From Chlorokybus atmophyticus (Eukaryota > Plantae > Mesostigma and Chlorokybus algae), in NCBI GenBank assembly GCA_009103225.1, contig RHPI01003491.1:183128-247127 (forward strand): a stretch of 64,000 bases of DNA. Direction: 5' to 3'. The translations under genes were made by a program, and so were the position numbers. The notes under the pieces were generated by a model. It was not told where the DNA came from. It saw only the letters and a program-made list of their open reading frames with translations, and made no database searches. Positions 8,589 through 61,188 of the stretch are shown piece by piece (positions within the stretch are counted from its first letter, which is position 1; every line of letters begins with the position of its first letter).

Positions 8589-8596
8589 TAGGGTTT
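8589..8596 (-). promoter_or_regulatory. Telo-box (AAACCCTA) in the divergent zinc-finger/SET intergenic region
   Basis: TAGGGTTT on +; short motif, so a chance occurrence is possible. Confidence 0.3.
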
Positions 8597-26205: not shown

Positions 26206-27582
26206 ATGCAGGCGGCAGCGGCGGCGGTGGTGGCGTGGCCGTTGGCGGCGCCCTCCAGGCCGAGGTGCTTGCGACTGAGGCATACACGAAGGCGTGGAGC
26301 TCCCGCTCTGACGCGCAGCGCGGTCGTTGCGGCCGCCGCACAGGAAGGTGGCACCATCGTTAGGGAGGTAAGCAGGAGATGAGCGGGCCGCAGCTGTTTT
26401 TGTTGTATTGCGTTCATGCTATAACTTGCGTGCCATCTGATGTATTGCGTTTTAAACATGGAGTGTACTGTGTAAAAACATGCTCACATGCTGCAGTCCT
26501 GATGTTTCGAACAGTATGACCGCAGCATGTCTTTGCAGGAAGTCCTTAGATGTCAGGATAAGTCAGGCAGTGCTCATTATGCATGCAAGTAATGTACGTG
26601 CATGAACATGCATACGCTTCTTGGGTCTGGCATGACATAGACTGCAACAACCCCTTCCCGCGCACTCAAAGCAGCAGTGTGCGCTGCTTTGAGGGCGCGT
26701 GAGTGTTGAAGGCATTCTTTGTGCACGCATTGCCGCAGGTCGTTTGTAAGTTGAGGTGACATCTACTCGTGTAAGCTTTACTCAATTACTTTTATGTGCT
26801 TTAGGTGTTGACGAGAGAGCAGCGCCAAAAGCTCAACACTCTCAGCGACAGAGACTTCTACGGCTCCCCACGTATTGTAAGCCTTATGCTCAACGCAGGG
26901 TCTGTTTCCTGTATACCACCAGCCTGTTTCAACATCTCACATGCAACACTCGTGTTAGGTCACACACGTGGACGATGCTTTCATCGCAAACCTCACCGAG
27001 CTGTACCGGCGGAGAGTGCCCGCCGGAGGGCGTGTATTTGACATGATGAGCAGTTGGGTGAGTCATCTACCTCCCGAAGTGGAGTATGCAGAAGTCATCG
27101 GCCATGGGATGAACGCCTCAGAGCTAACAAAAAACCAACGTTTGGATAAATGGTTCGTGCGGGACCTCAACGCAGACCCTGGTTTTGAGTTGGCGGACCA
27201 GAGTGTAAATGCCGTGTTGTGCGCCGTGAGCGTGCAGTACTTGCAGCAGCCTGAGAAGGTGTTTGCGGAGATATACCGCGTGCTGAAGCCGGGAGGCGTG
27301 TGCATCATGTCGTTCAGCAACAGGATGTTCTACGATAAGGCCATCGCGGCATGGCGGGAAGGCACGGGGTACTCACGTGTGCAACTGGTGAAGAGTTATT
27401 TCCTATCAGTCAGGGGGTTCACGCAGCCTGAAGTGATTACAGAGTTGGAAAACCCACCTGCGCAGAGGCGGGACTTCATCTCTACTCTGGTGAAGCTCTT
27501 TCAGCGCTCTTCTAGTGACCCGTTCTATGCTGTAGTCAGTTATCGCAATTTTAAACCTGAAGATGCCGGAGAAACCATGTAG
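26206..27582 (+). CDS. Class I SAM-dependent methyltransferase (Methyltransf_11, cyanobacterial type) with transit-peptide-like N-terminus, 3 exons
   Basis: MQAAAAAVVAW..GTIVRE|VLTREQRQKLNTLSDRDFYGSPRI|VTHVDDAFI..FDMMSSWVSHLP..GHGMNASEL..VSVQYLQQPEKVFAEIYRVLKPGG..SFSNRMFYDKAI. Confidence 0.9.
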
Positions 27583-29219: not shown

Positions 29220-32390
<3,171 letters not shown>

Positions 32391-39510: not shown

Positions 39511-40590
39511 GGAGATGGATGGCAATGACACCACCAACAACAACACACACAACAACAACCTTTGCACAAACACACACTTGCAGTGCAACTTCCAGTGATG
39601 ATGCACAGTAGCTGCCGACATGTTATATATACCAGCACCGGTGCCCGGTTAGTTTTGCCGCAGATGGATGGCCGTCGGTTAACCAAGCAGCCGGTGGCGG
39701 AAAGGATACATGCATCGGTGTGACCGAGTTGCACACCGAGTCATATCGTAGTGATCAGTACATGTGCCGGTCAAATGCCGGTATTTTGTACAATAGCTTT
39801 CCGCGTTGACGCGTACGTACAGTGTGATGACAGCAAAGGATAAAGGTCAGGCTGCGCAAGTTTTGCGCGTCATCGCACCGTACATCCTCCTCCTGGCCTT
39901 ATCTCAGGTCCGCGCAAAAACACAAACTCGAATCAATTCGTTCCCTTGTACTTTTGCGCGTACGACAGGCACTGCAGCCGTAGATCGCAGCAGAAGAATG
40001 GAATCGACGGAGCGTAGGACGTTCGTACACCGATGTACAGTTTTGGACGGATACGAGCCACAAGTCGCGCATAACATACCAATAGGGTTTATACATTTTT
40101 GTCGCGAAGGCTGGAGACTGTCCCTACCAGCCGCACTGTACTACGGACGAAGGGACAAGTAGGGGATGGAGGCCTGCTTCACGTTACGGAGTTCGTATCG
40201 AAAGCGATCGCGGAGTCAGCCTCTGAGACCGACCGACCAGCTGCGACAGCTCGGATGTAGGTGGATATAGGCCTAGCCCTGCCTCAGGCAAAGAGCAGGC
40301 TGCCTATTGCTGCGCAGCTACCTCACGTTGAGGCCCTATCTCATCCAGACTTGTTTGAGCCTCAAGTATGGTCAAGTCTGGCACTTCTGGACCTAGAACT
40401 TGTTGCCAATCAGTAGTAGGTGGCCTAGCGCTGGCAGTACGGAGCATGGCGGCGTCAAGTTTCCGCTGTAGAAAATGCACTTTGAACTATGCACAAAGCC
40501 TATTTTTAATGAAAACTAAACCTATTCGATGACTTATGTGGTGCATGTGGTGCATGATGTGAGCCCCGACAGCGCGGGGAGCAGGGGCGG

Positions 40591-40695
40591 NNNNNNNNNN
40601 NNNNNNNNNNNNNNNNNNNNNNNNNNNNNNNNNNNNNNNNNNNNNNNNNNNNNNNNNNNNNNNNNNNNNNNNNNNNNNNNNNNNNNNNNNNNNNN
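40591..40695. other. Assembly gap
   Basis: N run followed by poly-G. Confidence 0.99.
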
Positions 40696-40739
40696 GGGGG
40701 GGGGGGGGGGGGGGGCGCCTGCTGATAAACATTACCTTA

Positions 40740-41511
40740 CGAGCAAACAGAGGTGAAGACGCAATACAAATACCACAACTTGCAATACTTTATCTTAAAA
40801 TTTATTTATTCACATATATAATTTAAGATGCTTAATCGAACTTTGCGCAAACTTATTGTTACGCTATCAAAAGTTTCGTGACCGTTGCGATCAAGCATGT
40901 TGAAGCCTGGAATATTGCTTTATGTAACGGCTTTTGTCAAGTATTTACGAGTTATATACATTTTGCTTTATAAACATCATCAATGATGACTCATTGGATG
41001 GTCTAACGAAGCAATGTTTTGCATTGTGCTTGGCAAGTTGTAGTATAATGTACATAATTTGCTTTCGCACAACACAACACGTATATATATATATATATAT
41101 ATATATATTACATATATGTACATATATGTATATATGTACATATATGTATGATTAGCCATATACGAACATACACCTCATTGCATACTTTGTATACATGAGC
41201 AAAAGTCCCACAAATGTAACATATTACGTTATATAGTACGAGATGGGGCATACAAGCTATGTTGCTCCTTTTATGGCACCGATTTTTGCTGTCATACCCG
41301 AGGCCTAGTGGTTGGAGTGCCGTGTCCCAACATCTGTGTCCATATGGTTTAAACACATTTGTGCGGGTTCATCGGTGAGTGCGTGCGTGAGTGGATGTAT
41401 GGTTAAGTGATGTGCAATTGCAAACGTAATACTGATCGCCGCGCTTGGGGGTCAATATAAAGTGCTTCCGAAGTGCTGGCCAAAAACCGAATATATATAT
41501 ATATGTGTGTG

Positions 41512-41556
<45 letters not shown>

Positions 41557-44200
41557 TATGTCACATAATTTATTTGCATATCATACGTACCCATTACATA
41601 TTACGTATTGTTCTGTGAGAACTTCTCGTACGTCATATACCAAAATGACAGGAACTGTTCATGCCATGGCCCGTTGTGGCATTTAATTTTTTCCATGCGC
41701 TTGACGCCACAATGCAATGTGGTCGACGCTATCCAATAATTGTAAGGCAATTTACGTTCATAATAATTTATTATGTTTAATTTTAACCTGTTGTATTATC
41801 AAGTTTGACACGAACAGTTTGTAATATGGTATATTACACCATGTACATTTCGTCCAAAAACTAATAACGAAAAGCCTCGGAACCAAAGTTCAACCATACT
41901 TCCAATGCCATTTTTTCTGCAAAATCAATCCATTGGCTTATAACCCGAAACATGAAAAAATGAAGTGGAAAGTAACTCTCAGGCAAGTGCTTTGGGCGAA
42001 ATGTGTGTGTTTGCACAAAATAAAATACATATAGCAATAACTTGTACATGTATAACATTGATAACATCGTCAAATATTAACGATATGATGCATACGGTAT
42101 GGCAATATAATTTGTAAGTTAAGTTAACTGTATGCATTCAGTAATATAACAAAATATGGGGTACATGGCAGGTTTCACAGTTTCAAGTTTACAGTGTTAC
42201 GTGCATAATACATGTACCAAAGAGTTTGGACCGAAGCAACAACAAGTTATCACTAAAACAACACTTTACAATACTCGCAGTGTACGCGGCGCAACCTTAA
42301 GGGCTCTGTCGACTAGTGCTGTGCTCTTGGTGCATATAGCGAAAGCTGGCAAAACCCTGGCGAAAATTTTACAATGTTTTACATACACAAAAGTTGCAGC
42401 CAGCAGCTTGCACATTATTTGCGTTGCAATGCAGCCCTTGTAAAGCAATTATAAACTCACACTTTTTATGGACATACATTATAAGTCCAGATAAGGGTAA
42501 ATGACATATGTTTTCATTAAACGAATAATAGCATAGTATTTCATTTAATTATGCCATTTACCCCCCACATTTCACGCGTATAGAGTTTATTCGGCTGTTG
42601 ACCATGTTTGATGACGCAGTAACTATAGCGTGTAATCAATTAGCGTTACATGGTAAAGTGGATTAGTTAGAACGAGGGTGAGTAGTGGCGGCATGTCTTT
42701 GGGGCCTGCCCCGACCTCGTACCCCTAAAAACGCGGCCGTTTTGACCACTAACTGTGCTGCAATTGCATCAAATCGCTAGCAATTTTGGGTCACCGTTAG
42801 CTAGCAGTTGCCGCCGAGATGGTTTTCAGTATCTTTTATGCATCTCTGCAATGATTGGCCAATTTTCTGCATTTTTGAGCAACGGCTGTTGTCACCGTTG
42901 CGATCCCATTTGATCAAATTCATGTGTGACCAAATGGTGGCCTAACGATGCAATTTTTCGTTTAGTTGAAACTTAACGTTAAGGTAATTTAGGTTAGCAT
43001 TTTTTTAATGATTGTAACCTTAACATTACTCACTGAAATCCTTAGCATACCGTGGCATAAACGTTACGATTACTATTATGCTTTTTAACGCTTAATTGCA
43101 GGTTGCTAGCCATCTTGCAACAGATGTGCTTCATTTTGCAACACATCAGCAATATCACCATGTATCATTGTATCTCCATACTTATCAATACACATAAACA
43201 TGATCAATATGCAGCAGCAAGCGGCCACGTATGCAGTATTGTGCTTAATTTTAAAATTTCTTCTCTCTCTTCTCTGGCATGCGTTTAAACAATTGAATGT
43301 GCTTTGGACGGCCAGGATCGTTTAGGCAGATCGAACGGTGTAACGCCTGTACTCGCCGCCTAGCCAATGAGAAGCCGGGCCGCACATACTGCCGCGCAGC
43401 CCGGCAGTCGCGGGTGCCGTGTAATGGCCCGATCAACAGCCGCACCATTTCATCTCCGCACGTCACGTGGCAGAAACGTTAATACTTAATGTATTGTCTT
43501 GATACATGTGGGACATGTTCAGATCATATAAGCCATGTGAAACTATGAATGTATCATGTATAAACGATTGCATGTATCGAACATATCATGCATACATGCC
43601 TATATACATAATATGCTATGATTATAGTATTATACGCATATAATGTGTTTATTGCTATGCATTGCTATAATACATGTGCATATCTTGTCAATTATATATA
43701 GTGTAATATATTATATGTATAATATAAAAATACTCATATATAAGTGCGTATATATCATGTATAGTTTGCACTTATGATACATATACACATTTAGATTATT
43801 ATTCATTACAATGCATAATACTATATGTAGTCACAATTGCATATAGCTATTAAGATCATCATATAAAGTATATATCATTCGCATACATTGTGAGCAGTTG
43901 CAAGAAATGGGGACGAGCTCTGGACGGTCGAGACTTGTTTTGATAGATCGGCCGATAGCTAATTATTGCCGCCTAGGCAATGAGAGGCAGGCGGGCCGCG
44001 CAGCCCGGCAGTCGCGGGTGCCGTTTGTCACACGGCCGTCGTGCGTGGTGCGCGTGTGATGTGTCTTGCCCTAATGCCGGCCGGCCCAATCACACGCCCA
44101 ATCAGCCGCACCGCTAGTTGGTATGTGAGTATATTTAAATATATCATATTGTATTACGTCGGTATGTCTGCATGTATGAAAGGCCGCGCACATGAACATG
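40740..44200. other. AT-rich, ORF-poor block with (TA)n/(TG)n tracts; probable non-autonomous TE relic
   Basis: Visibly more AT-rich than the flanks; TA-type tracts at ~41083-41150 and 41490-41556; no recognisable protein; termini not found. Confidence 0.5.
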
Positions 44201-44547
44201 TTTAATGTGCTTACATGCGTGAGATTACCGCTAGAAGCTGCACTTTATAACGCGGTTTTGGCGGGAAAGGCGGGGTTTCGCCAACCACCAGCATCGGGGG
44301 CCTCTGGTGCAACATGGCGAAACCGCAATGCTGCACCGCGTACACTGAGTACACCTCACAACCCACAGCCCGTTGGTATAAGCGTACAGTCTACCCCCGC
44401 TAAGAGCATACTGTTTATCCTCAGCCATCTTATGCTCTTGGCGGGGTTATTCTCTAAGCGTTGAAGAGCATAATATGCTATTGACTGCCAAGAGCATAAA
44501 TATGCTACTAGCGGGGTTTTGTGTATAATACCTTTTATGCTCACTGC

Positions 44548-45600
44548 CAGTTTCATTTCGCAGTTGTTTGCGCCGCGTGATGCACGTGATGCGTAGTATG
44601 CCGCCGTGTATAGTAGAACGCGTGGCACGTGATTTGAATTTCGCGCTATGATTGTCGTGTATGTACTGATCGCCGCGGCGTAGCACGCGGCGAAGCACCC
44701 TATCTTAACGCCCGCGAACTTAAGCATAGATGCACAGCTTGAGTGTATAATCGGACGCCCCCCAAAAAATCAACGGAGTTAGCGGAGCGCACGTGGCATC
44801 GTTCAATATATGTTTACCGTTGGATGTTATTTAGGTATTAAACACGCGTGACTTGGTGTCTGATACCGTTACTCGTCACGATTTGTGGTACGTGATTTTT
44901 ATTCTATGACCGCTCGTGTATGTATTGATTGCCGCCGTCAAGCACCCTATCTTAACGCCCGCAAACTTCAGCATATATGCACAGGTTGGGTGTATTGTCG
45001 GACGCCCCCCAAAATATCTACGTCGTCAGCGGAGAGCACGTGGCGTCGTTTTGTATATGTGGGCCGTTGGATGTTATTTAGTCATTAAACACGCGTGACT
45101 TGGTGTCGGATACCGTCACGCGTCACGATTAGGGGAGTGGTGCAGTCGATTTCGCAGCCGATTTCTGCAGCCTAATCGCCTCGACGTTTTGGACACGCAT
45201 ATCGTCTCAGCATGCGGCGTGTTGTCGTTTCCGAAACGTTGGACGCAACGCAATTATGAAGAGCGCGTGACTTTGTGTCGGATACCGTTACGCGTCACGA
45301 TTGGGCGAGGTGTGCAATCGATTTCGCAGCCGATTTCTGCAGCCTAATCGCTTCGACGTTTCGGATACGCATATCGTCTCAGCATGCCTTGTGCGGCGTG
45401 TCATCGTTTCTGAAACGTTGGACGCAACGCAGTTATGAAGCGCGCGTGACTTTGTGTTGGATACCGTTACGCGTCACGATTGGGCGAGTTGTACAGTCGA
45501 TTTCACAGCCGATGTCGCAGCCTAATCTGCTTCGACGTTTTGAAAATGTATATGGCCTCAGCATGCCTTGTGCGGCGTGTTGTTGTTTTCGAAACGTGCA
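44548..45600. repeat. Nested tandem repeats (2 units of ~245 bp, then ~3 units of ~175 bp), with palindromic hairpins at unit junctions
   Basis: CGCGTGAC-TT(G/T)GTGT(C/T)(G/T)GATACC-GT(C/T)AC(G/T)CGTCACG starts at 44845, 45092, 45264 and 45443. Confidence 0.9.
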
Positions 45601-45693
45601 TCTGGCGGCGGACGTTAGTGTGGTGGTGGCGTGGTGTCGCTTAGTTGCACTGCTATATTTGCGGTGGTTGTGAGTAGGCCTGTTCTTGTAATA

Positions 45694-47961
45694 ATGTCAA
45701 GTGTTGATGGAAGCGCAAGTGCTGTGGGGGATGTCGGGGTTCCTGTTGAGCGTTGGTGGACACGCGATGAAGTGAACCATTACCTCAAGGTAAATTACAT
45801 TGTGTGGGTATTCAATGCATAGTGATAATGCATGACAATTGGTCATTATGACATGTTCGATAGGTGGACGGTACGTTGTTCCCCTTTATGCCACCTGCTG
45901 ACGTTTTGCAAGCTGCCAACGCTGTGAATGCGGAAAGCGCTTATGGTGATCACCCTGCGGCGAAACATTCAGTTTCATTTCGCAGTTTTCCGCGCCGCGT
46001 GATGCACGTGATGCGTAGTACGCCGCCGTGTACAGTAAAACGCGTGGCACGTGATTTGTATTTCGCGCTATGATTGTCGTGTATGTACTGATCGCTGCGG
46101 CGTAGCACGCGGCGAAGCACCCTATACTAACGCCCGCGAACTTAAGCATAGATGCACAGCTTGAGTGTATAATCGGACGCCCCCCAAAAAATCAATGGAG
46201 TTAGCGGAGCGCACGTGGCATCGTTCAATATATGTTTATCGTTGGATGTTATTTAGGTATTAAACACGCGTGACTTGGTGTCTGATACCGTTACTCGTCA
46301 CAATTTGTGGTACGTGGAATTTTATTCTATGACCGCTCGTGTATGTATTGATTGCCGCCGTCAAGCACCCTATCTTAACGCCCGCGAACTTCAGCATAGA
46401 TGCACAGGTTGGGTGTATTGTCGGACGCCCCCCAAACTATCAACGTCGTTAGCGGAGAGCACATGGCGTCATTTAGTATATGTGGGCCGTTGGATGTTAT
46501 TTAGTCATTAAACACGCGTGAATTGGTGGCGGTCGCGTTGCCCGGCAGCCATGGAGCCATTAATCGGGCAATGGGACAGTTTCACCGACGACGACACAGC
46601 ATCACCATGTCAGCTGATTGAGCATTGTGGGCATCGTCACGATGAATGTTCAATTTATATATTTTGTCTGATCGCAGCACAAGCGCCGGAGATGTTTTTA
46701 ATTGCCATTTCGGTGTTTTTTCGCGAAAGCGATCAGCGTCTATTTGTGCGTTTAGAGGATGCTGCTTGTGTGGTGGGCATGAAGAAGAAACCTTGACTCA
46801 GTGCACTTTTTGACATGGACGCAGAAGGTGTGGATGTCACCGAAGACATACACGATGAGACTAGCATGTGGGACGTGGCTGAAGGTATGCAGTTTGTGTA
46901 CGGTAGACATTGTTGCAGCATGCTGAAGCAGGCATAATTGCTGTCAGTAATGTTTTGCATGTAGGTCGCCAACGCGCTGGTCTTTCAGTGTCAGTGTATA
47001 CCTCAAATGTCGCTATGTCCTTGGCGCCGACAGCACCACCTTGCGCCCCTCCTGACCCTGGCTCCGACACAGAAGAAAATTTTTTTCATGACGAAAGCAA
47101 TCAGTCCGACCAAGAAGACGAAGCTGCTCCCCAGCGAGCCGAAGTCCCGGGCGATGACGACTTGCACGCCCCCCTTCAGCAAGGATCTGAAGATGTAATG
47201 TTGATCGTTAATTCCAGTTATTCGAGGCTCAACAAGTGGCGTTGGTGGGTAGTTTGGGTCTGGAGTATGGCTGCACAAGACTGCCGCGTCAGTCGGTTGC
47301 AACAGGAGACCGAGGTATTCATTAATCGTGGTCACTTCTTGTATTGCCATGGCAACACCGGCAACTACGGCACTACTATGCGGTTGCCAGACATTCAGGC
47401 CATCATGCAAGCGAGCTTCGCTACAGCCCAAGCACATGCAGCTGCCCTGGCCGCCCCTACAAACCTCACATTGGAGGCACCGCCGGTCACGCTAACGTTG
47501 CCCGCTACATCCAGAGCACATGCAGCTGCCCTGGCCCTGCCCGCGCCTACAGACGTCACATTGGAGGCACGGTCGGTTTCGCTGGCGTTGCCCACTCCTC
47601 GACCACATATCACTCCTGCTGAAAGCAGCCGCAAAAGACCTAGGTTGCCCTCGCCTTCACTCAAATGTATTTGTAATGGAACGTGTGTGTGCGTTACTGC
47701 TTTTGGCAGTCATTGCCGGTTTGTTTTAGACTACACAATGTACACATCACAGTGGTAACTGGGCCAAGCGCATGCAAGACAGAGGAAGGTGGACCGAGCT
47801 CACGGCCTATGAAGCGCGATGACACCGCTGAAGATCTCATCAACGCGCAGGTGGCTTCCTTTGTGTTAGACTACACTAAAACTTTCAGCGAAGAAGAGTT
47901 TATTAACATTGTGCGGCGTGTGTATCGCAAAGGTTATTGGAATGTAGTGATGACTGATTAG
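45694..47961 (+). pseudogene. Intron-containing cargo gene of unknown function, interrupted by the repeat copy
   Basis: MSSVDG..RDEVNHYLK|VDGTLFPF.. joined by a GT-AG intron; later exons FRESDQRLFVRLEDAACVVGMKKKP*, an acidic stretch and an ~84-bp duplication (AHAAALA..TLEA). In-frame stop; model uncertain. Confidence 0.45.
45970..46520 (+). repeat. Second copy (~550 bp) of 44548-45100
   Basis: Both begin CAGTTTCATTTCGCAGTT.. and run co-linearly with scattered substitutions to ..TTAGTCATTAAACACGCGTGA. Confidence 0.92.
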
Positions 47962-48457
47962 GGGTCTAGTAACGTTTCGAAATGTACTAGTGGCCTTATA
48001 TTACGCGCACAAGCAGGCTGCTCTTCCGAAACGTCCGTGTTAACTGTAAACGACGAAATTCAGCAGTCTTAGCCATCAATGTATTCACCGTTTGCCGTTG
48101 ACCCCATGTACGACTGTACTCCCATATGATGGTACTGTGCCTTGAACGGCAACAAACTCAACCAGGATGCATTTACCGTTTGCCGTGTACGTGATGTACG
48201 ACTATATTCCAGTACAATGGCCCCGTCCCGTTAATGGCTGACGGTATCGCTAATGCCTTGCCGATTGTTGTTTACCGTATAGGGAACACGTGATGCGTCA
48301 TAAATCGAGTCTGGACGTGACGCGCGTATAGGTAGCCGCGTGGCGGCCCCACAGTCGTAGATTAATAAAAACTATCGCACTACATCTAACGACGGTACAG
48401 AACAGCAATATATACCAGTAGACATCGCTGTCAGCCGTTGATTTGATTGCCTAACCC

Positions 48458-51400
48458 TTGTGCGCCTGGCGCGGATTGGGCGCGGCGGTGGCGCAGACGA
48501 TTCGGAAGCTGTATGGCACCTGGGAGAGGAACTTGAAGGCCCTGTATCGTCCGAAACGACGGTGTTTCTTGCACGTCAGAACTATGAGTACGTTATTGTT
48601 GCAGTGTATGGCAACTGTATCACATACGTTGTTTTCCATGCAACTAGAGTCGTGGACGGCCGTTTGTAACCAAACTTTCGTGTTGATGTTGTGTTGCTGT
48701 TGTTGCGGGCGTGTGCAAATCAGCAATGATGGCACGCACACCAAGGTGCGACCGTTTGCCAACCTTGCACACCCTCCGTATTCATTAGTCAATCTGTATA
48801 TGGATAGATATATACGGCAAAACACGAAGTGGGCCATATGTTTTTTGTGTCGACGTATACATGATTGCAAAACAGAGTTTTTAAGCGCACTTACGCCCCG
48901 ACATATCAAACGCCTGTTAATTTCAAAGCCCTTGCACATCATGATGTTATCTTTACTAAACACGAGATTAAGTCTGCAAAAACAATACCACAATTATGGT
49001 ACCACGCATGGTGGCATTGACGTTGAATCCGTCTTTACTGGTCCGTTAATACAATGGTCAGATAATAGTTTGCTATTAGATGGGCATGCCACAGTTTTGC
49101 AAGATATCTTATGCGAAATGCTAGCGCAGAATGTGTATGTTAAACACTATCGCACAATGATGGAACAGCCACGACGTAATCTCGGAGTGGTTGTGTAGAC
49201 TGTAGATGTGATCGCAAGCTTAGTAAGTCATCATATTGCGCGTAACCCCAATGCTGTTGATCTTGAAACCGAAGTGCATCGTGCAATATCTACATGCGTA
49301 CCCGTTGAAGCGGGTAGCATGCCAAAATCGCGCAATACGCTGATATACAATGGAAAGCCTTTTGCTGGAAATTTGATGCAACGCAATTCGCAAGAAGAAG
49401 TTGAGCTCTTCGTTTCTCCCATGACCACACGCAGCGCTAACATGTCCGTAGAAATGGCGTTATTCCCGTTCTTATATCCATCTGGCAGGCATGACTTCAG
49501 CGGTACGTGCAACATTGGAACATATTTGTCATATCGTCTCTCTTGTTTATTTTTGGTGTACACATTGTACAAGCCATACTTGTTATTGATGTATCAAGTT
49601 TGGCAAGCATGCCGCGTTATGAGTACGCACTATACAGTATGTATTGAGAAAGAGTTTAACAAATACAAAAAAAAACATCCCTTCAGTACAGATGACATGG
49701 CGTACCAAAATATTATCAAATATCATATACCCAGTACAGTGCCACAGTCGCCATTATGGCACAAGAATCAATTGATCGATGTGTTGACGTTAGTCGATCA
49801 TTGGGGTCTACCTTCATTATTCCTGACTTTGACGGCTGACGAGGTGTCGTCGCCACGCTGCGCAGAGTTGATCATCTCGAAAATGTTGTGCAATCGATCA
49901 ATTTGAACATGACATGGCGTGATTGTCCCGTAGAAGGAGCGATACTATTTCGGGAAAGATGCACAAAGTTTTTAAAGCAATTCATATTGGGCAAAGGTAT
50001 TTTGGGCGAAGTGCAGCATCACGTGTTGCGTTATGAGGTACAGCACCGCTGATCTGTACATGCACATATTATGCTGTGGGTCGCTCCACAAGATGTCGAC
50101 CGCGTAAGCAACGAGATTACAGCAGTGGTTCCTGCAGATGTAGACTCAGCAACAAACAGATTCATACGTCCGCAAGATCTGATACAACAAAAGTTGTTTG
50201 ACCATATCATAACAAAACATATGCATACATGTCGCGAAGATGGTTGTCCGAAACAAGGGCCATGCCAATATGGATTTCCATTTGCTGTACACAACGACAC
50301 TTGTAAGTACGATGCGCATTAACGTCGCTATTTATATTATCGTCCCCGCCATTGCGATCGCAATGTAGTACCATGCCACCCCGCGATCGCGTTATTATGG
50401 GGCGCGCACGTCAATTTACAACGCATATGCAATGAGGCATGGTCATATTATGTGTTAAAATACGCAATTAAGTCCGAACCATTTGGTAAACTTAATCTCA
50501 ATCCTGATGCTGCACGGTGTTTGGGTTTAAAAGGAATGACCGACGCCGAACTGCGCGTTACGTCAGCGCTGTACATGTCGAAACCTGTGAGCCCTGCGGA
50601 AGCAGCTTTGGTATTGCTCAATATACCAATAGTGCATATGTCATCATCTGTTGAATACTTGGATTAAAGACCCAGACAATTCCGCGTGATAAACATAGGT
50701 CGTGGCGCCAATCTACATAACGTTGACAAGTATTGCGCACGGCCAGCCTCACTTAAAAACGTTACGTTTTATGATTAGTTTCGAGAATACGTTTGTGTCG
50801 ACAGCAAAACGCATGCTACGATTCAATCTGACCATTCTACAAACAAGTACATTGACTTCATGGGTGTCACCATACACACCACCACGAAATATGTGTATCG
50901 CTTATGCCAGCCCAAAATAATCAGATTTACCGATTCAATAAGTTATCATCCAACACATCACATGCAAGCGTATTTTTACAATGTGCTATTGCAAAAGGTG
51001 CCATTTCGAACAGAGAATCAAATACAACCATCTGAAGACGCTGATTGTTTACAAGAATGCATTACTCGAGGAATAGTGGATGTCGACAACATTGATGAGC
51101 ACTTGCATCAGTATACACAAAGGCATCTGCAAAAAGAGGTCGATGGCGAATTGTTGTCGAACATCATGCAACAAAGAATGCACAACATGCATATGACACC
51201 TATACCATCTTCGATTGACGTAATCACAAATGCCGATGATACAAACATGTTTAAACGTGACTTCAATATGAACACTGCCGACAACTTAATGGGCTCACAA
51301 CGGTCAATATTCAACGACATAATCAATAGTGGTGAAGGATTGTATGTTCTTAGCGGCACTCCAGGTAGTGGCAAAACACGTATGATTAAGACACTCGCAT

Positions 51401-52677
51401 CACATTATGCACGCCACGGAAAACATGTGCTCCTGACCGCTAGCACCGGAGCTGCAGCCAAAAGAATACATCCTGCAGCCACCACAATTCATAGCGCCTT
51501 TAAATTGCCTTTTCGCGATGATGGCTTTATGAGCACATTGTACCCGACCGATGCAGCGTACTTGGGCATTGCAACTATGGACGTGCTGATTATTGACGAA
51601 TTTTCAATGCTCACAAGCAGTACGTTTAAGAGTCTGATTATGCATCGCATGCAAACCGTGCATGCATTGATGACTATACTGGAAGTGGTCACAGTGATTC
51701 TAGTCGGTGACATGCACCAGCTGCCAGCCGTATGCCATCATCGAGTTACACCATGCCTACAATGTCAAATCACGACCAGTCACTGGTGGACTGATGCAAA
51801 AGTTATGCATCCGACAAGTTCTATCCGACAAGAACAGGATCCGCACTTCGCGCAATTTCTTTCGTAAATCCGGCACGCTATTCCTTCGAGCGAACAAATA
51901 AGAGAAGTCTTAGCATCGTGCGTCTGTGATTTCCAAACCGTCTTACGAACTCCAGGAGAAATCACGGTCATTTGTTCCCATGTTGTCGACACAATGGTAT
52001 ACAACCATCTCATATTGCAGAAATTATTCCCTGATGCGGTCATTACAAAAGTTAACATCAAACACAACTGCCCTACCAACACAATAGACACAAGAATTCT
52101 GCAGTTTTTGGAAGAACCTAACTTTCACCGCATGCAATCGGTGTGCATTGGTGCACGTGTACTGTTCATGAAATCAGATACCCGTCGGGGCATCACGAAC
52201 GGCTCCACCGGTACTGCCACCGCCATTGAACTAGATCCAGATTCGTTGCTAGCTGACATGAAGGCAATCCACGTGCAATTGCATGACATTGATCGCATAG
52301 TCCGGGTCACCCGCAGCGACCGAAAATACTGCTATGACACAAGGCAAACGTACTTCAAATGTACATTCCCTATGCAACTGGCCTATGCTGTCACCGCCCA
52401 CAAATGTCAAGGAATGACCATTGCACATACCGCATTCGTCGACATTCAACACGCTTTCTGCTCTGGCATGTGGTATGTAGCGCTGTCAAGGGTGACGCAC
52501 AGATCCTACCTCAAGTTGAAAGAATTGCCCGCACCGCAAATTTTTAAAACCGACATAGACGTTTCAGAGCAACGAACGAGTCTAACACGTTGCAAGATGC
52601 ACGTGGCCTGCTGCAAAACGTCCATACATGTAAATATGCCAATATGCATATACGCAGAAAGATCGAAAAACGTATGA
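48458..52677 (+). pseudogene. Helitron-type Rep/helicase (HUH endonuclease + PIF1-family helicase), broken by stops and frameshifts
   Basis: Rep motifs LPSLFLTLTADE, YEVQHR*SVHAHIMLW (HUH), YYVLKYAIKSEP, KPVSPAEAALVLL. Helicase motifs LSGTPGSGKT, LIIDEFSML, LVGDMHQLPAV, SIRQEQDPHFAQFL, FPMQLAYAVTAHKCQGMT, YVALSRV. Confidence 0.92.
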
Positions 52678-52980
52678 ATAACGCTAACTACATGACCTAA
52701 TGTTATGCGTAACGCCATGAATGGATAAGGCCATCGACCTATCACACCGTTGTAATAGGCCGCGGATTGGCGCAGCGGCGCGGACAATCGCATAAAGCAA
52801 TCGACCACTCCAGTCGCAGCAATTGTGGTAGGCCGCGGCTTTGGCGGCGGCGGCGGCGGCAGCGAAACCACCACCATTTCAGAATAGACAGGCCAGGCAG
52901 CGGCGCCGGCGAGAAGCAGTAAGTGTTTTGAAACGTCGCGTGCCATTTGTGGCAGAGCATTAACTTCCTGTGCGACACAG

Positions 52981-54173
52981 ATGGCTGACCTCTTCAGCGC
53001 TGCGTTCGAGGCTGCGGTCAAGCAGCTCGACGACCCTGATCCAGCAACGGACACTCCGTTGAGGGACGAGCCGCTACCTTTTACTGTCAACCAGCGGCGG
53101 TTGCTGAACAGTCTTGGGTACTTACCGGAGGAATACTATGATCGCTACGACATTTCCTACACCGACATCGACCACATGATCACAAAAGCAAGACAGAACG
53201 AAAAGGATTGGAAGCGCAAAAATCAGCAGGAAGTCGGCGCACCTACAGGTAATAAACCACACGTTCATACCAAGTGTGTAATAACTGCAAAGTTGCAAAT
53301 TGCTACTGTTCTTGGTAACACCCCAGTGATGATCTAACAAGGTTGTGCATTAGGGTCCGCCAAATACTTCTTCGCCAAGTTTGGCAAGCAATTCGGCCAC
53401 AACATGAATAGGTACGACGCGTTCAAGGCGCTCAGCGAGATCATGAACCGGGAACTCGAACGCGACGGAAAGACAAGGGTCATCTAGACAGTGCAGCTGT
53501 TGGAAATTATCTTTGAGTACAAAGCGGCAACGTGGGAAAAGTGCAAGCATTTGACTCAAGAAGAGGCAGCCAAGATCATTGACGCACTGGAGAAAGTCGC
53601 TGAAAAGGAAGGATCAACGCTGACACCACAACGTCAGAGACAAAAGAGGACTTATCTCCAGGATTGCTGCGACATTGCTTCGCCATCCACCGTCCCAACG
53701 CAATCAAGCATGTCCACGGTAACACCAACTACCGCAGAGCCCGCCACACAAAAAAACAAAAAAACACCAAATCCAGCGTTGGAGCCAGCAGTACCACCTT
53801 TACAAACTGACGCTTACACGAACAGGTACAATACGCATGTGCAACTTGAACATACCCTGCTACAACACAAACAATAATCACGAATTGTCAGGTGGTGTGT
53901 ACGTGGGGCAATCCGTTCATCCCCACCAACGGTTCACCCAACACGCACGTAAACCGCCCAAAATGAAAGATGTGTTGAAAGATGCCCCGTTTAAAGAACA
54001 AGTCACCATGGAGGTGATGGGTTCCTACGACTTGCAAGCAGAAAATGACGCGGCGGAAACCACGCTGACACTGAAGCTGCGTCGTCAAGGAGTGCAACTT
54101 GAATACCTTGGTAGGAGCACCATTGAAGACTCGCCAAGGGTGGATGTTCAAGCAAAACGACATCATGAAGTAA
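52981..54173 (+). pseudogene. Spliced cargo gene ending in a GIY-YIG endonuclease domain
   Basis: Exons MADLFSAAFE..GAPT|GSAKYFFAKFG..RVI*TVQLL..LTQEEAAKIIDALEK. Then, in a shifted frame, QYHLYKLTLTRT|GGVYVGQSVHPHQRFTQH..AAE..NLNTLVGAP*. One in-frame stop and two apparent frameshifts. Confidence 0.72.
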
Positions 54174-54467
54174 ATGTCGCCTCCTCATTAGACAACGCAT
54201 TGCATTTGCTGTATTAGTGGCAACTAGGTTCCCCAGCATCAACCCGGATAGGTGTATGATTCATGCATGTTTTACAAATAAAAGCGCATTTGTTAAAAGC
54301 GCCTGCCCAACACAAAGCCAAAAATATAGTAACAATATGTGCGACATATAACATTTAAAAGCCAAAAACGTTTCCAGTAATCACAACTGCCGCACAACTA
54401 CACGACTACAACTAATAACAATTAAAATCAACAGTAATCTCTGAAGTAATCTAAAGTAACCGCGCTA

Positions 54468-55629
54468 CTAAGGCGGAGGACTACTCTCCTCCAACTGCTC
54501 CTCGTGCTCCGGCTCCGAAGGGTCTACCTCCGCATCCGGCGGATCCACCTCCTCCAGGATCTCCTCTATCTCTTCCTGCCGCCGCTGCACTCCTCGTCGC
54601 CTATGACGCCATGCTGCTTCATCGTCCTCCAATGAAGGCGGAGACTTAGAAGTCGCTACTTCTTCGGGGGGCTCTTGGCCGCGGTCAAGCGCCCGCTGCC
54701 GGCGACGTGCTTTCGCAACACGCTGACGCTCTTTGCGGATGCGGCGCTTGTCCTTGAGCTTCGCCTTCATGATGCGACGGCGGTTGACGATAGTGTTGGT
54801 GTACCGCGGGTCATGGGCTTGCCGCTCGTGAAAGTCGACGGTGCCGGGGTTTCGGGCATCCCCGCGGAAGACCTTGCTCAGGTCACTGTCCTTCTTCATG
54901 GGCTTGCCGCTCGTGAAAGTCGACGGTGCCGGGGTTCAGGGCATCCCCGCGGAAGACCTTGCTCAGGTCACTGTCCTTCTTCATGATTGTGACCCGACGA
55001 CCATGAAGGGCAAGCAGGTTCCTGCATCATAACGGATTATCATTGACAAAACATGTCAAACATCAATCATCAAAAGCCTGCCACCATGAACAAGCACACA
55101 ACGCAACTTACATGTCCTGCATGTATTCGGTGACAAACATCTCCCCAGCTTCCTGAAGTGCACTCAGAGCTTTAGCCCTCCAGCGAAAGGTGGGTGTGTG
55201 AAACACGTCAGCTGCAACACCGCTTCAGTATATATGCAATATAAGCAATTCAATTACAAATTGCATACCGTATTTCTCGTCAGCGAGAAGAGCGTTAACA
55301 CATCCGCGCACAACTTTGCAAAAAGACAACTTGGGGATGATCGGAGCGGTGCTCTTCTGCATCCACCAAATTTCGCGCAGGGGTTGCGTAACGCGTGGCT
55401 TGCATGAACACCCAGATTACCAACAAGTATATATCAAGACATATGCTAGGACAACTCCTTACTTGCGGCGAGGACGTGCGGGGGGCGCAGCCGGCAAGGC
55501 TTGCTCATGTGCAACAATTGCACCTTCGCCAGCAGGTGCAGCGGCGCCAACAACAAACCGCCCACCAGGACCCCGAGGACGCGGGTAAGCACCATCGACG
55601 CGACGACTGCACTGCTTTGTGCGGGCCAT
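54468..55629 (-). pseudogene. Divergent histone H3 / CENH3-like gene with long C-terminal extension, 4 exons (55629-55463, 55399-55269, 55211-55112, 55021-54468)
   Basis: Hand splice: MARTKQCSRRVDGAYPRPRG..PARPRRK|PRVTQPLREIWWMQKSTAPIIPKLSFCKVVRGCVNALLADEKY|ADVFHTPTFRWRAKALSALQEAGEMFVTEYMQDM|NLLALHGRRVTIMKKDSDLSKVFRGD.. It aligns to H3 throughout (LREI..QKST, ALQEA.E, H..RVTIM.KD). The intron-1 acceptor reads CAA instead of CAG, and an 85-bp duplication shifts the frame. Confidence 0.88.
54811..54985. repeat. 85-bp tandem duplication in the last exon of the H3-like gene
   Basis: TCATGGGCTTGCCGCTCGTGAAAGTCGACGG..GGTCACTGTCCTTCT occurs at 54811 and 54896 with 2 mismatches. Confidence 0.95.
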
Positions 55630-56240
55630 CGCCAACACCTACCCCAAACCTACCCCAAACTACACTCAAGCACGATAATACACAACACCAGCGAGGCAAC
55701 AACAACCAAGGAGCACAAAGACGTTTCAGAAATACGAATGCGCCACACGACCCAAAACAGACACATATGAGCCGCCGAAACGTCGAGGCACTTTCGCCTA
55801 CGCAATCAGCTGCCAATTGGCCTACGAAACAGCCTGTGGAGCCGTCACCACCCTAACCCTAAAAGTGTCATTTATCAACAAGAATATGCCGATAACCGTA
55901 CCAACTAAACGCGATCGATGCTAATGTGCATGACCGCGGTTAACAAACACATGTACAGGCGGGCAGTGAGCATCACCGCTGGTTCGCTTTAGCATGGTGA
56001 GCAATGAAGCTCAACAATGCTCATGTTGCTACATTCTTGCTTGAATACCATACAATTGCGTTGCTATAGTCAGATGAATCCCAACAACATTCTTGCCATT
56101 TGTGTGACATGCAGCCAAGATGCTGCGGTTGTAATGCATTGTTTAATGTACATCTGCTAAGCCTGTCAATGGGCTTGAAATGTGTTTCAGTGTGTTGACG
56201 TTTGTGTATGATGCAAAGCATGCACACTTGCATGCATGTC

Positions 56241-58460
56241 TCATGCCTTGAACATAATGAAAGTTCGCATGTACATCAAACATCTCAGCCACTGGTCATC
56301 AACTACAAGAGGGTCTTCGGCCGTTGCACTGGTGGTGGCTGCGTGTGATGTTGATGCCTCATTGCTCGAGGCATGAAAGAACTCGTGCAAGCGTGTCTGG
56401 TGCGAGGAGCCAAATAGCTGATGACGAATCACCACATTGCGGATGTGCCGCAGCGCCAACTGTAGATGCTCAGGCATAAAGAACTCACTGCCAGCCACGA
56501 AGGCCTCAATACTGTCCAAGTGCTGAGGACACCCGAATGTCGTCACAACCGGCGGTGCGCACTCATCATCATCTGCAATGTGTTATGTGAAAATCATGAG
56601 AAGGAAAGCTACATACGGTGTGCATGCACGCGTACACACCTTCCGCGTCGGGATCGGCGGTGTCGTCCGTCGGTGGAGTCAGTGCCCCAACACTCATAAA
56701 AATGTCCTCGTCACATTGGCTAGCCTCAGTAGGAAGATGATCATCCGCCTCAACGAACTCGTTAGCGGAGAGCATGTCAGCACGTGGAATGGGCAAACGC
56801 TGCATCATCTCACCCATGTCGTGTATCACCGCGTGAATGATGCGCTCGGTGTCGGCGGGAGTGGCCTCATACCATTCCGCGGGGGTAATGCCAGTCTTCC
56901 TCCAGCAGTTGGCAATGGTTGTGGCAGTCAGCTCGTCCCACGCCTCGTGATTCCACATGATGGCTTCACGCATCTGCACCTTCACTTTACTCAAGTCGAG
57001 GGTGGGGTCTGCACCATATTGCTGGAGAAGATGCTGCACAAGCTTCCTTTTGTACCCGCACATGAAGACCATCAACAACATGATATACACCACAATAAAC
57101 TCTGACAAACAAGGGGGGTTTGGGGGGCCGGGGAACCAAAAAATTCTGATATCTTGATAGAAATAAAGGCTCTGTTTGTTCATAACACGGCATGTATTGT
57201 GACTTACCTGGCCTTGTATGCAGCGATGATGCCAGCATCCAAAGGTTGGACTCTGGATGTAGTGTTGGCCGGAAGAAACAGACACTTTATGTGATTAGTG
57301 ACAGCGTTCGGAAGCCTTCTTCCAAGCCCTGTTCCGCATACACGCAGGCATGCGTTGAGGAGTTGTCCATCAGCAGCAAGATGTGGCGGTTCTGTAGCTT
57401 CATATCTAGATTGAAGGCACACAACCACCGGCTGAAGACCTGTTGCAAGCATCACAACAGTAAGTGACATGCACAATCAATGCATGTGCAGCTGCAAATG
57501 AAGTTGCATATGCACATGCACTCACCCCGGAGTTCATCCAAGCCTTCTTGTTGTAGTCGTAGTCAACGCCAATGCGGATTGGCGTCCAAGTGCTGCCAAA
57601 GGACTTCGGACGCTTGTAGGTGCCAATGATGAGGACTGGTCGCTTTTTAGAACCGTCAGCGTTGACACACAAAACTGCCGTGATTCTGTCCTTCTCTCGC
57701 TTGCCCCCTCTAGCTTCCTCCGATGCAACTACTAATGTACGACGCGGACGTGCTCTATAGAACACTCCGCTCTCATCCATGTTCCATACATCAATGATGC
57801 GATAGTTTGCTAAGATCAAAGGCAATCTACTACGAGCTGCATCCACACCCTCCGCATCTGCATCAGCTGCTTCGCTATGCAGAGTTTTCGCAGCAATTGA
57901 ATGACGCTTTTTGAAACGGTGCACCCAACCTTGCGAAGCGTTGAACCCTTCTATTCCTAACCGGTTGGCAAAATCTGATGCTTTCTCCATCAACAATGCA
58001 TCAGTGATCAACGCATTGCGTGCTCTGGCCTGTGCAAACCACTCATACAATCCATCTTCTAACTTGGGATGAGCCCCAATCCGCATCCTTTTGTTTTTGG
58101 CCGCATGCTTGCCACCCACAGCCAACGCATCGGCTATTTGCTGTCGCTGTTTATTGAGAAGTTTGGAGAGCGAACTCTGCTTGATAGTGAACTTCAACTC
58201 AGATTTAATAATAGCAATCAAGTCCGCTTGCTTAAGACCTTCATTGGCGTCACACAACTCAAGTTATCACGCTTGATTTGTGCGGCCATGCTGACCTACA
58301 ACAACAATCACACACTACATTACTGTTTGTGCATACACAATCACACACTGCATGTACGTGCATGCACTGCATGTGCGTTGCAAACCCTTACTTGTTGTGC
58401 GCCGCCAGCAGCGGCGCTGCAACAGCCGTGACCAGCTAGCCGCCCTACAAGTTGAGCGGC
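56241..58460 (-). pseudogene. pogo/Tigger transposase (CENP-B-type HTHs + DDE_1), intron-containing, frameshifted
   Basis: HPKLEDGLYEWF, FNASQGWVHRFKKRH, WNMDESG, KDRITAVLCVNADG, KKAWMNSG|VFSRWL..LLMDNSSTH, (shift ~57295) FLPANTTSRVQPLDAGII, TIANCWRKTG, C-terminal QTRLHEFF. Start exon uncertain. Confidence 0.92.
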
Positions 58461-58995
58461 ATGCCCATCAACTATACACCGCCCGCCACCGCTGCCCCAG
58501 CCTGCGTCTCCTCACCGCCGTCGCTGCCGTCCGAAGTGGCGGCGATGATGCTTTGCAACGCTAAGTTACATTAAGATACAGTGAATCACATGCATCACGC
58601 CCATCATGCTCATCACGCTGCGTGCCGTATGCATCACACTTGCACCCCCCGATACAAGCATATCCTCACTTAAACTTACGATTTTTTCAAGGAAAAAAGA
58701 TATGCTCTTCGCGGTTAGTCATATTCTCTTGAGACGCGTAATTTGCCTGTAGAACGTTTGGTAATCTCATTTTTTATGATACTAACGGGGTTATTCTCTT
58801 GAAATGAATTCTCTTGGCGGGGGTAGACTGTACAACGTTCATCACACCACACTTGGGAACACTGTACACTTTCTCGTGTTCTGATCGAAACACGTCCGTG
58901 TGAGAAGTGAAGGCCCCTACACCAGCAGGAGAGCGAGCAACAGCGGTGCCGGCGGCCGCAGCGTGGCTCCGCAAGTTGTCGTCAGCGTCCCTTCT

Positions 58996-61188
58996 ATGGC
59001 TTACTCCATAAACAGCAAGCGGTAAGCAACAATGGCAGTGGCAGCAAGCAGCTGCACGCTTCCGCAAGCTGCATGTGTTTTCAGAGAACAGGCATGATGG
59101 TGGTCTTGTTGTTGTCGTGTGTTAGCTTTGAGGGCAAGGTGTTCCTGGTGACTGGCGCCAGCAGCGGCATTGGCGCCGTCACCGCGGAGCACCTCGCCGC
59201 CCAGGGCGCCCACGTTTGGGTCACTGCTCGCCGCAAGGACCTCCTGGAGGAGCTTGAGCGGAAAATTGTGGGCGAAAGCGGCAAAGGTAGGGTTTCGAGT
59301 GTATGCACCATGCAAGTACGTGGGTTTGCTGTGTTCACTCTTGCGTGAAGCGCATGTGTGCTGAGCCTGGTTAGCAGCATATCTTGGGTACACAAAAGAG
59401 ACAATTATGGCGGTTTCGGCTTTCTGTCGTGCATTACGTCCATAGCAGCAGTTCAATTGGAAGCTGGAAGTCTGCCAGCACGCTTATCACCAGAGAACAC
59501 CAACGTGAGAGTTGTTCGTCCGTTAGCTTCAGCATTGCTTTAGCGTTATACTGCCACAACAATCACTGTTGTGGCAGTATAAGACCAATGCACTCTGCCA
59601 CCACAACAGTGCCTGCTGTGGCGGCTGTTGTGGCAGTGAGTGGTAGCAGGTTGAGACATCAATCGAAGCAGCTTACACAATGTGTCACGCATTTACCATG
59701 TGAGTGTGAGTTATGTCCACCAACATGAACGCAGGTTCTATCACGGAGAGAATACGATGTGTACATAAAAGTGTTTGTTATGTCAACCAACATGAACGTG
59801 GGTCTATTATGGAGAGAAAACAATGTGTACATAACAGCTTGCTTGCCAGTCGCTTCTGTGACCCCTTTTCGCATGCACCTTTAGCTTGTTAAATCAAACA
59901 GTCTTGCAGCGTCATGTTGTCGTTGTCCAGTGTTGCAACCATTGTTTCCAAACTCTCTTTTTCTCACAACACCAACAGTGGCTTTCTCCCCATGCGACAG
60001 CAACTGCCGCTGTGTTGGACGTGACAGACACAGCGCAAGTTGAGCAGGTCAAAAGGGGTGTGCATGGTTGTGTCACGTGGTGTGGTGCATAGCAGCTCCA
60101 TCGCTGACTGTTGGTGTGTGTGCTGTTGGAGTTAGGTAGTAGCGGACATCGTGGCAGCGCATGGAAAGCTTGACGGGGCCTTCAATAATGCAGGTGTGCA
60201 GTCTCGCCTTGCTGCTCATACAAATACAGAGTTTGACACAACTCTCTGTCATGTCAAAATTGTCTCTGTCAAGAATTGCGCTGGCATCAAGTAGATACTG
60301 TGCATTTTTTGCATGCCCACCCATACGCGCACATACGCACACACGCCCAACTTGCATGGGTGGTTTAACTGGCAAGCACACGCAATGTTGCTGTGGTTGC
60401 AGGCTACAACCCACCAGCAAGCCTCGTTGTCAACAACAGCATGGACGATTTGGACAAGACGCTGGCCATCAATGTTAGAGGCCAAGCAGCCTGTATGAAG
60501 GTAAACTTGTCTGCTGTTTTCCCAGCGCATGCTCTCTCACAGTGATGCAGGTGATGCCAGTGTTGTATTATGCGAGCCGTTGCTGATTTGCTGTGTCGTT
60601 GGGTTCTCTCAGGCGTTGTGCATTTACTCGGTCTTGTTTATTTGACTCTGTATCACCATTCTGTATGTTTACTCAACCGCAGGCAGAGCTGCGACAGATG
60701 CTCGCGCAAGGTCATGGCTCAGTTGTGAACAACACAAGCATCGCTGGCCACAAGTACACGCCGCTCAGCAGCAGCTATTGCGCCAGCAAGGCTGCGCTTA
60801 ACAGCTTCACTATCTCTGCAGCAGTGGAGGTAAACATCAAGTTAACCAGCAATGAATATACAGACACATGCGTGTGTGTGCGCGTGCGTGCGTCAGCATT
60901 GGGAGCAACCATGCTCATGTTGTTGTGCAGGTTGCGCAGAGTGGGGTGCGCGTGAACGCGATTGCTCCCGGTTTTACTCTCCCGTCAGAAATGTTCTCGG
61001 CAATGGTGAACGGCCCTTCCTATTCGCTGGACTCTATTCTCAATCTCATTCCAAGCAAGAAAGTTGTTGACAGCGAAGAAGTTGCTGCTATGGTGGCAGT
61101 TCTACTTGATGACAGGCTGTCAAAGTCTGTGACAGGGCAAGTCATCAGCATTGATGGGGGTGCTGGTATCAACCACTACAATTTGTAG
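58996..61188 (+). CDS. Classical short-chain dehydrogenase/reductase, ~7 exons
   Basis: MAYSINSKR|FEGKVFLVTGASSGIG, LDVTD, GKLDGAFNNAG, NTSIAG, SYCASKAA, VRVNAIAPG, VTGQVISIDGG. Confidence 0.93.

Follow-up and report, generated by a model that had tools for sequence, protein, structure and literature searches.

A broken CenH3-like histone H3 gene in a Helitron-like insert nested within a pogo-type transposon of Chlorokybus atmophyticus

The 64-kb window analysed here, a stretch of Chlorokybus atmophyticus contig RHPI01003491.1, contains a transposon island in which one DNA transposon lies inside another. The outer element is of the pogo type and is split by a Helitron-like insert, which carries tandem arrays, the remnant of a RepHel gene, a small gene, a putative GIY-YIG nuclease gene and a histone H3-like gene with 330 bp of its upstream region (Table 1). 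The last two lie tail-to-tail, as proposed in an earlier note on this DNA, which had described the histone gene as a dedicated nucleosome component of the mobile element.

The H3-like gene and its lesions

The earlier note had reconstructed a four-exon minus-strand gene with an H3 fold, and this is borne out by colinear exon matches to H3, CENP-A and Cse4. Homology to H3 was tested exon by exon, and the spliced protein was not scored as a whole. Exon 1 specifies a tail of 56 residues in which Arg, Pro and Ala are abundant. Exon 2 matched residues 45–82 of H3 with E-values of 0.035–0.8, and nearly all of its 73 PDB matches are H3. Exon 3 aligned with residues 83–108 of CENP-A (E 0.008), or 84–110 across H3, CENP-A and Cse4, and with positions 73–97 of the Pfam Histone family (E 0.022). 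Exon 4 aligned with residues 112–137 or 202–227 of Cse4 in two constructs (E 3e-4), with residues 108–133 of H3 (E 3e-3) and with Pfam Histone positions 99–114, its matches to alpha3 of Cse4 and H3 spanning E-values from 3e-4 to 5e-3. The single-exon scores against Pfam Histone (PF00125) were 15.5 and 13.6 bits, below the cut-off of 26.4. Since the matches of exons 2, 3 and 4 are colinear with H3, chance can be excluded, and the three independent matches in order, combined with the ARTKQ start, identify an H3-fold gene beyond doubt. In the predicted product, the H3 fold is covered from alphaN through alpha3. Intron 2 (57 nt) and intron 3 (90 nt) have canonical GT..AG ends and share their TGCAG acceptor with the enolase introns of the window.

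The best structural-database matches of exons 3 and 4 are centromeric H3s. In the alignments of exons 2 to 4, Q68 is replaced by C, F84 by W and T107 by M. Furthermore, loop 1 has 12 residues between the end of the match at H3 L82 and this W, compared with a single residue (R83) in H3, and the surplus of 11 also shows as an 11-residue gap against a distant H3 variant from metagenomes (L011, described below). A longer loop 1, the absence of Q68, the change of F84 to W and a replaced T107 are classical hallmarks of CenH3, the last three reportedly as set out by Malik and Henikoff. The H3-like protein carries these hallmarks of the CENP-A/Cse4 type, suggesting a centromere-type variant. In addition, the equivalents of all five H3–H3 four-helix-bundle residues (H113, R116, D123, L126 and R131) are kept in the alignment of exon 4 to Cse4 and H3, as the earlier note had stated. 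The protein therefore resembles CenH3s in loop 1, in the three replaced positions, in its conserved alpha3 and H3–H3 interface, and in a divergent N-terminal tail of which ARTKQ alone is kept. Unlike CenH3s, the protein is prolonged by a C-terminal extension of 125 residues, and its loop-1 insertion (+11) is unusually long. Its gene, moreover, sits in a transposon and is broken in this copy.

Two lesions are predicted to disable the present copy of the gene. The donor of intron 1 is the GT at 55462–55461, and an in-frame reading needs an AA acceptor (GT..AA), while the sole nearby AG lies one base further and shifts the frame, giving a 114-aa product without the histone fold. Because all other mapped introns end in TGCAG, the simplest reading is a G-to-A loss of the acceptor. 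Dinoflagellate-type non-canonical splicing of this intron was considered and rejected, as every mapped intron of the host genes in the window is canonical (GT..AG, 70–175 nt, TGCAG acceptor). The second lesion is the tandem duplication in exon 4. Its unit of 85 bp is not divisible by three, so the extension is put out of frame and the protein ends at about 178 aa, right after alpha3. An 85-nt GT..AG intron excising one duplicate is unlikely, its ends (AAG/GTCTTC and GCAAG/G) being unlike the introns of this genome. RepHel is damaged as well: it is colinear with the uninterrupted ORF (open reading frame) of a related element, L007 (E 6e-84), and three stops interrupt its frame within the alignment, near 50320, 50665 and 50776. 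Because of these three stops, the whole element copy is considered dead, and the lesions of the H3-like gene agree. A current function of the gene, as the earlier note had envisaged, finds no support in view of both sets of lesions.

Removing one copy of the 85-bp duplication yields an open frame for a 288-aa protein that includes the C-terminal extension. The extension frame of 125 codons stays open in just 1.9% of composition-matched shuffles, and a single-sequence AlphaFold model of it contains two long helices, one with a pLDDT (predicted local distance difference test) above 90, followed by a disordered acidic tail. The 143-aa ORF of the last exon had no match in a word-index search of 5.8 billion proteins, no credible homolog when 1.84 billion proteins were searched with phmmer (one junk match, E 7.5e-4) and nothing in viral contigs.

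Nesting of the insert in the pogo element

The position of the gene in a RepHel/GIY-YIG block, also proposed earlier, was substantiated by the boundaries of the two transposons. In a blastn-short self-comparison, an inverted match between 44.38 and 58.83 kb reached 38.2 bits, compared with at most 32.2 bits in seven control segments. Both ends read TA followed by CAGTCTACCCCCGC[T/C]AAGAG, and the window contains just two copies of the 22-nt terminal inverted repeat (TIR), inverted relative to each other, where none is expected. The TIR pair and the TA duplications therefore mark a single pogo-type element spanning 44387–58830. Its five left-hand GAGCAT/ATGCTC motifs fall within 150 bp, where the background density is 0.3 per 500 bp. 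This series breaks off at 44548 and restarts at 55968 and 56017, and the exact 12-mer ATGCTCACTGCC at 44537–44548 has its sole reverse-complement copy in the window at 55962–55973. Taken together, the TIRs with their TA duplications, the GAGCAT series and the 12-mer pair identify the segment in between as an insertion into a pogo element of about 3.0 kb. The H3-like gene is thus transposon-borne and lies at the right edge of the insert. The outer element is similar to pogo/Fot1-type members of Tc1-mariner in its TIRs starting with CAGT, TA duplication, transposase with HTH_Tnp_Tc5 and DDE_1 domains and subterminal repeats, and differs in having been swollen from about 3.0 to 14.4 kb by the nested insertion.

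Within the insert, the RepHel remnant is predicted to have a HUH Rep domain and, after it, a PIF1-type helicase, which classes it as Helitron-like. Canonical Helitrons (HLE1) have a 5′ TC and a 3′ hairpin with CTRR, and insert between A and T. The inferred junctions of the insert, ...ACTGCC/AGTTTC... and ...ACAGGCG/GGCAGT..., depart from this rule, with no CTRR and no site between A and T. In HLE2 elements (Helentron/Helitron2), terminal inverted repeats of 12–16 nt, a stem-loop past the right repeat, insertion between T and T and DUF6570 have been described (PMC11417382). The 12-mer pair at the junctions, a weak 17-nt palindrome (76%) located 16 nt past its right copy and the T preceding its left copy can be read either in the HLE2 layout or as part of the pogo GAGCAT series. 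The right-end stem-loop folds no better than shuffles (z = 0.56), and DUF6570 was found neither in the window nor in the relatives. The two readings of the junction, as HLE2 terminus or as pogo motif, are at most 75 bp apart, and the H3-like gene is inside the insert either way. No inverted repeat was found between the ends of the insert and no terminal motif common to the insert and its relatives, and the termini of L007 were not distinguishable from chance repeats.

The region upstream of the H3-like gene shares short sequences with other parts of the insert. The six copies of the motif TCNGAAACGT in the window all lie inside the insert, between 45.2 and 55.7 kb, where 0.32 would be expected in the whole window. 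Furthermore, a 24-nt match of 83% identity connects the end of RepHel (52553–52576) with the H3-like upstream region (55715–55738). The motif copies and this match connect the upstream region with the remaining insert. The near-palindromic GTTTCNGAAACGT / TCNGAAACGT sites, located at 45227–45597, 48025–48034, 52559–52568 and 55721–55730, could be bound by a protein of the element or act as a promoter element in common. Both the CCAAT motif and the telomere-like dodecamer TTAGGGTTAGGG that the earlier note had placed upstream are present; the dodecamer is a single site, and 5% of shuffles give one too. In fission yeast, histone genes have a TTAGGG-type motif upstream.

Table 1. Coordinates of genes, repeats and transposon boundaries in the window
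Feature	Position	Strand	Remarks
STT3 gene	22924–23658		host gene on the flank
Methyltransferase gene	26968–27582		host gene on the flank
Enolase gene	29386–31634		host gene on the flank, intron-rich
AT-rich block	40001–44000		directly left of the pogo element
TA target-site duplication	44385–44386		left side of pogo
pogo left end	44387–44548	plus	TIR beginning CAGTCTACCCCCGC, then five GAGCAT/ATGCTC subterminal motifs
Tandem arrays	44548–46532		units of ~247 bp and 179 bp, 5′ side of insert; 179-bp units carry palindromic GTTTCNGAAACGT
Helitron-like RepHel/GIY-YIG insert	44549–55961	plus	11,413 bp, nested in pogo element
RepHel gene remnant	46910–52677	plus	Helitron_like_N 49208–49906, PIF1 helicase 50860–51867
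Small intron-containing ORF	52981–53490	plus	no assigned function; between RepHel and GIY-YIG
Putative GIY-YIG nuclease ORF	53837–54217	plus	tail-to-tail with H3-like gene, 250 bp apart
CenH3-like histone H3 variant gene	54468–55629	minus	four exons plus C-terminal extension ORF
C-terminal extension	54468–54842	minus	125 codons; predicted basic helices and acidic tail
85-bp tandem duplication	54811–54985		2.1 copies, 2 mismatches; shifts exon 4 frame
H3-like exon 4	55021–54468	minus	includes C-terminal extension ORF
H3-like exon 3	55211–55112	minus	
H3-like exon 2	55399/55398–55269	minus	
Defective intron-1 acceptor	55399–55401	minus	CATGCAA/G, local consensus TGCAG/G
H3-like exon 1	55629–55463	minus	begins MARTKQ
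Motif TCTGAAACGT	55721–55730	minus	92 bp upstream of H3-like ATG
CCAAT and TTAGGGTTAGGG	55816–55862	minus	CCAAT 55820–55816, TTAGGGTTAGGG 55862–55851; upstream of H3-like gene
pogo right part	55962–58830	minus	GAGCAT motifs at 55968 and 56017; transposase ORFs 56241–58257 (HTH_Tnp_Tc5, DDE_1); right TIR
TA target-site duplication	58831–58832		right side of pogo
Short-chain dehydrogenase gene	60593–60955		host gene on the flank

Related elements and the origin of the H3-like gene

The ORFs of the window themselves are absent from the protein collection searched, and the relatives of the helicase ORF found there are distant only (32–39% identity). A RepHel gene followed by a same-strand GIY-YIG gene recurs in three loci on metagenome contigs (L007, L008/L009 and L010). 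The GIY-YIG ORF of the window scored 17.2 bits in Pfam (E 0.0064), below the cut-off of 22.6. It is 36–43% identical to the GIY-YIG ORFs of these three loci with conserved YVGQS...R..QH motifs, and a precomputed PF01541 match is recorded for two database proteins that it retrieved (P0007 and P0008). As the pairing occurs in four divergent loci, the window included, it looks like a trait of the lineage and not a one-off capture. No H3-like sequence was found in L007, L008/L009 or L010 by tBLASTn with E-values up to 10, and no homology to these relatives was found beyond the GIY-YIG gene. Instead, the tail-to-tail slot past GIY-YIG is occupied in L007 (15090–15581, minus) and L010 (5509–6174, minus) by a conserved gene unrelated to H3, with the motif VGVGPLxWHQHID, 35% identity (E 2e-23) and no Pfam domain, which was not found in the window. 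The slot is thus filled differently across the loci, and the cargo varies between lineages. There is no second H3-like copy in the 64-kb window, and a metagenome scan with the GIY-YIG alignment found nothing.

A degenerate HGRRVTIMKKD pattern matched a single locus in the metagenomes, that of the H3 variant mentioned above (L011 541–1396, minus). The same intron-containing gene is present in L013 and L014, and the metagenomes are of soil type. One of its exons matched Pfam Histone with an E-value of 1.6e-16, its fold has 41% identity with that of the window protein, and the two share ‘MQKS’ in alphaN and HGRRVTIMKKD in alpha3. The variant is extended C-terminally by about 90 residues and lies tail-to-tail, at a distance of about 150 bp, with the C-terminus of a hAT transposase (Dimer_Tnp_hAT, E 2.5e-7 and 2.3e-10). 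This linkage may be a coincidence, seen as one locus in three samples.

With some reserve, we favour the explanation that a CenH3-like gene of the host was captured by one Helitron-like lineage and then underwent neutral decay. One RepHel + GIY-YIG lineage would have acquired an intron-containing gene as host genomic DNA, in an ordinary Helitron gene capture that is unusual solely in comprising a whole histone-variant gene. The Helitron-like carrier would then have inserted into a pogo-type transposon of about 3 kb, and decay would have brought the lost intron-1 acceptor and the frameshifting duplication in the H3-like gene and the three nonsense codons in RepHel. Capture at the DNA level is suggested by the retained introns, and these together with a host-like GC content point to host genomic DNA as the source. 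The H3-like exons have a GC content of 0.60 and a GC content at third codon positions (GC3) of 0.62, and the exons of the host enolase and STT3 genes have 0.52–0.60 and 0.52–0.72, compared with 0.43–0.44 and 0.44–0.47 in RepHel. The earlier argument that the gene is too divergent for a recent capture loses its force, since the divergence is of the CenH3 type, which a freshly captured host CenH3 would display alike, and the exon GC is host-like. We infer that the gene came from the host, that a single insertion event took place and that the present copy lacks function.

Several points weigh against this explanation. The relatives compared are distant (32–48% protein identity), and the H3-like gene may be confined to the sublineage of the window element. 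The ends of the insert match neither the HLE1 nor clearly the HLE2 rules, and a single insertion event is assumed. The high GC of the exons could partly stem from their Arg/Ala/Pro-rich composition. Moreover, the element-specific motif upstream of the gene fits a longer residence better than a fresh capture with a host promoter, and the extension frame that is still open indicates that coding constraint lasted until recently.

It is unlikely, if conceivable, that the H3-like segment (about 54.3–55.96 kb) entered the edge of the pogo or the Helitron-like element by a separate event and is functionally unlinked to RepHel and GIY-YIG; an unrecognised non-autonomous element or filler DNA in double-strand-break repair could have brought it there. 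Such an event would account for the sharp GC step, from 0.44 on the GIY-YIG side to 0.62 in the H3-like exons, for homology to the relatives stopping at the GIY-YIG gene and for insert termini that obey no Helitron rule. However, the TCNGAAACGT copies and the 24-nt match link the upstream region of the gene to the remainder of the insert, no termini, TIRs or duplications are visible around the H3-like segment alone, and a single insertion is the more parsimonious assumption.

The proposal of the earlier note, that the element family encodes a dedicated H3, is distinctly unlikely. Under this reading, a working CenH3-like gene would persist in the lineage and shape the chromatin of the element or its surroundings, the copy in the window being a dead one. 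The gene had once been complete, with its own 5′ region, inside the element, and the element-specific motif precedes its ATG by 92 bp. The kept H3–H3 interface and an extension frame that is open and predicted to be helical are consistent with such a role, and so are the conserved minus-strand gene in the same slot of L007 and L010, from which the slot appears to hold maintained cargo, and the long C-terminal extension and hAT neighbour of the L011-type variant. Against this, the window has no second copy, the C-terminal half of the protein lacks a homolog in both protein searches, and the exon GC is host-like. In the reachable data, two of the points that the earlier note had named as refuting its proposal appear to hold: the gene looks like a degraded copy, broken twice, and none of the three related elements carries it, two of them having the unrelated gene in its slot.

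A more far-reaching version, in which the RepHel + GIY-YIG lineage maintains its own centromere-type H3 with a coiled, charged extension and has intact, expressed copies elsewhere in the genome, is highly unlikely. If it were true, the H3 of the element would mark or protect insertions or seed CenH3-type chromatin, and C-terminally extended H3 variants beside DNA-transposon genes, as in L011, L013 and L014, would be a recurrent, undescribed transposon cargo. CenH3 is the epigenetic definer of centromeres, and a mobile multi-copy source of a CenH3-like protein could, if any copy were active, disturb or redirect centromere identity. Finally, the CenH3 hallmarks, the host-like GC, the TGCAG acceptors in the style of host genes and the TTAGGG-type motif of fission-yeast histone genes would also suit a native CenH3 or H3-variant locus of the organism, or a segmental duplicate, around which transposons landed. 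This is hardly credible, as the gene and the 330 bp preceding it are enclosed by the two halves of a single pogo element with matching TIRs and TA duplications, and an essential single-copy CenH3 would not tolerate two lesions.

As a probably captured and decaying gene, the H3-like gene adds to the known cargo of Helitron-like elements and introduces no new principle. Helentron-Cq-32A of Culex quinquefasciatus bears fragments of histone H4 and H1 genes (PMC4067079). Like the window element as read here, it is a rolling-circle (RepHel) element with host-derived histone sequence as a passenger, and its captured copies contain stops and frameshifts. In contrast, the window has a whole intron-containing H3-variant gene with its 5′ region, which is CenH3-like, is placed in opposite orientation and was seen in one copy. 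RepHel elements that additionally encode a GIY-YIG nuclease or a chromatin-related protein are likewise on record, namely the HLE2 family HelenSM92 of Sphagnum magellanicum with its GIY-YIG domain (PMC11417382) and a Phytophthora proto-Helentron with a SET domain (PMC4067079). For the combination of RepHel, GIY-YIG and H3, the earlier note had no published description to cite; these published cases take the novelty from the GIY-YIG domain and from histone fragments as such, and a full-text literature search turned up neither a complete H3-variant gene in a Helitron-like element nor the phrase ‘transposon-encoded histone’. HelenSM92 differs from the window type in that the latter recurs in four divergent loci, lacks a detectable DUF6570 and has ambiguous termini. 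The recurrence of RepHel + GIY-YIG suggests that a Helitron-like lineage has gained a second nuclease, and its rules for termini and its mode of insertion seem to differ from those of the described groups.

Nucleosome components encoded by mobile or parasitic entities are also known from large DNA viruses and polydnaviruses, which encode histones (review PMC9145170). The viral genes are intact and expressed, whereas the carrier in the window is a cut-or-copy DNA transposon and its gene is defective. Chromatin readers and writers fused to transposons have been surveyed along with viral histones (bioRxiv 10.1101/2021.11.30.470311; PMC9145170).

Other features of the insert and its surroundings

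The tandem arrays occupy the first 2 kb upstream of RepHel. They are nested and additionally form a 1422-bp higher-order repeat with 95.6% identity. Within the RepHel region, internal tandem duplications at 47425–47596 and 48079–48238 (units of about 90 and 88 bp, 72–77% identity) lie upstream of the Rep domain, in an ORF without a Pfam match. Among the relatives, the RepHel/GIY-YIG element of L008 is adjoined by a retrotransposon of the long-terminal-repeat type (8281–13381, minus) with reverse transcriptase, RNase H and an integrase with PHD, accompanied by a cytosine DNA methyltransferase ORF in the same orientation.

The window contains no match to rRNA, tRNA or Rfam families. The ordinary host genes flanking the island (STT3, methyltransferase, enolase and short-chain dehydrogenase) identify it as an insertion cluster in a gene-bearing region. 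The enolase does not have the insertion present in the enolases of alveolates and plants, and neither this nor the intron structure of the host genes indicates a firm lineage. The AT-rich block next to the pogo element has a GC content of 0.32–0.40, compared with about 0.50 elsewhere. It contains a 30-nt exact direct repeat whose copies, at 43391 and 43995, are 604 bp apart, and the block may be a degraded repeat.

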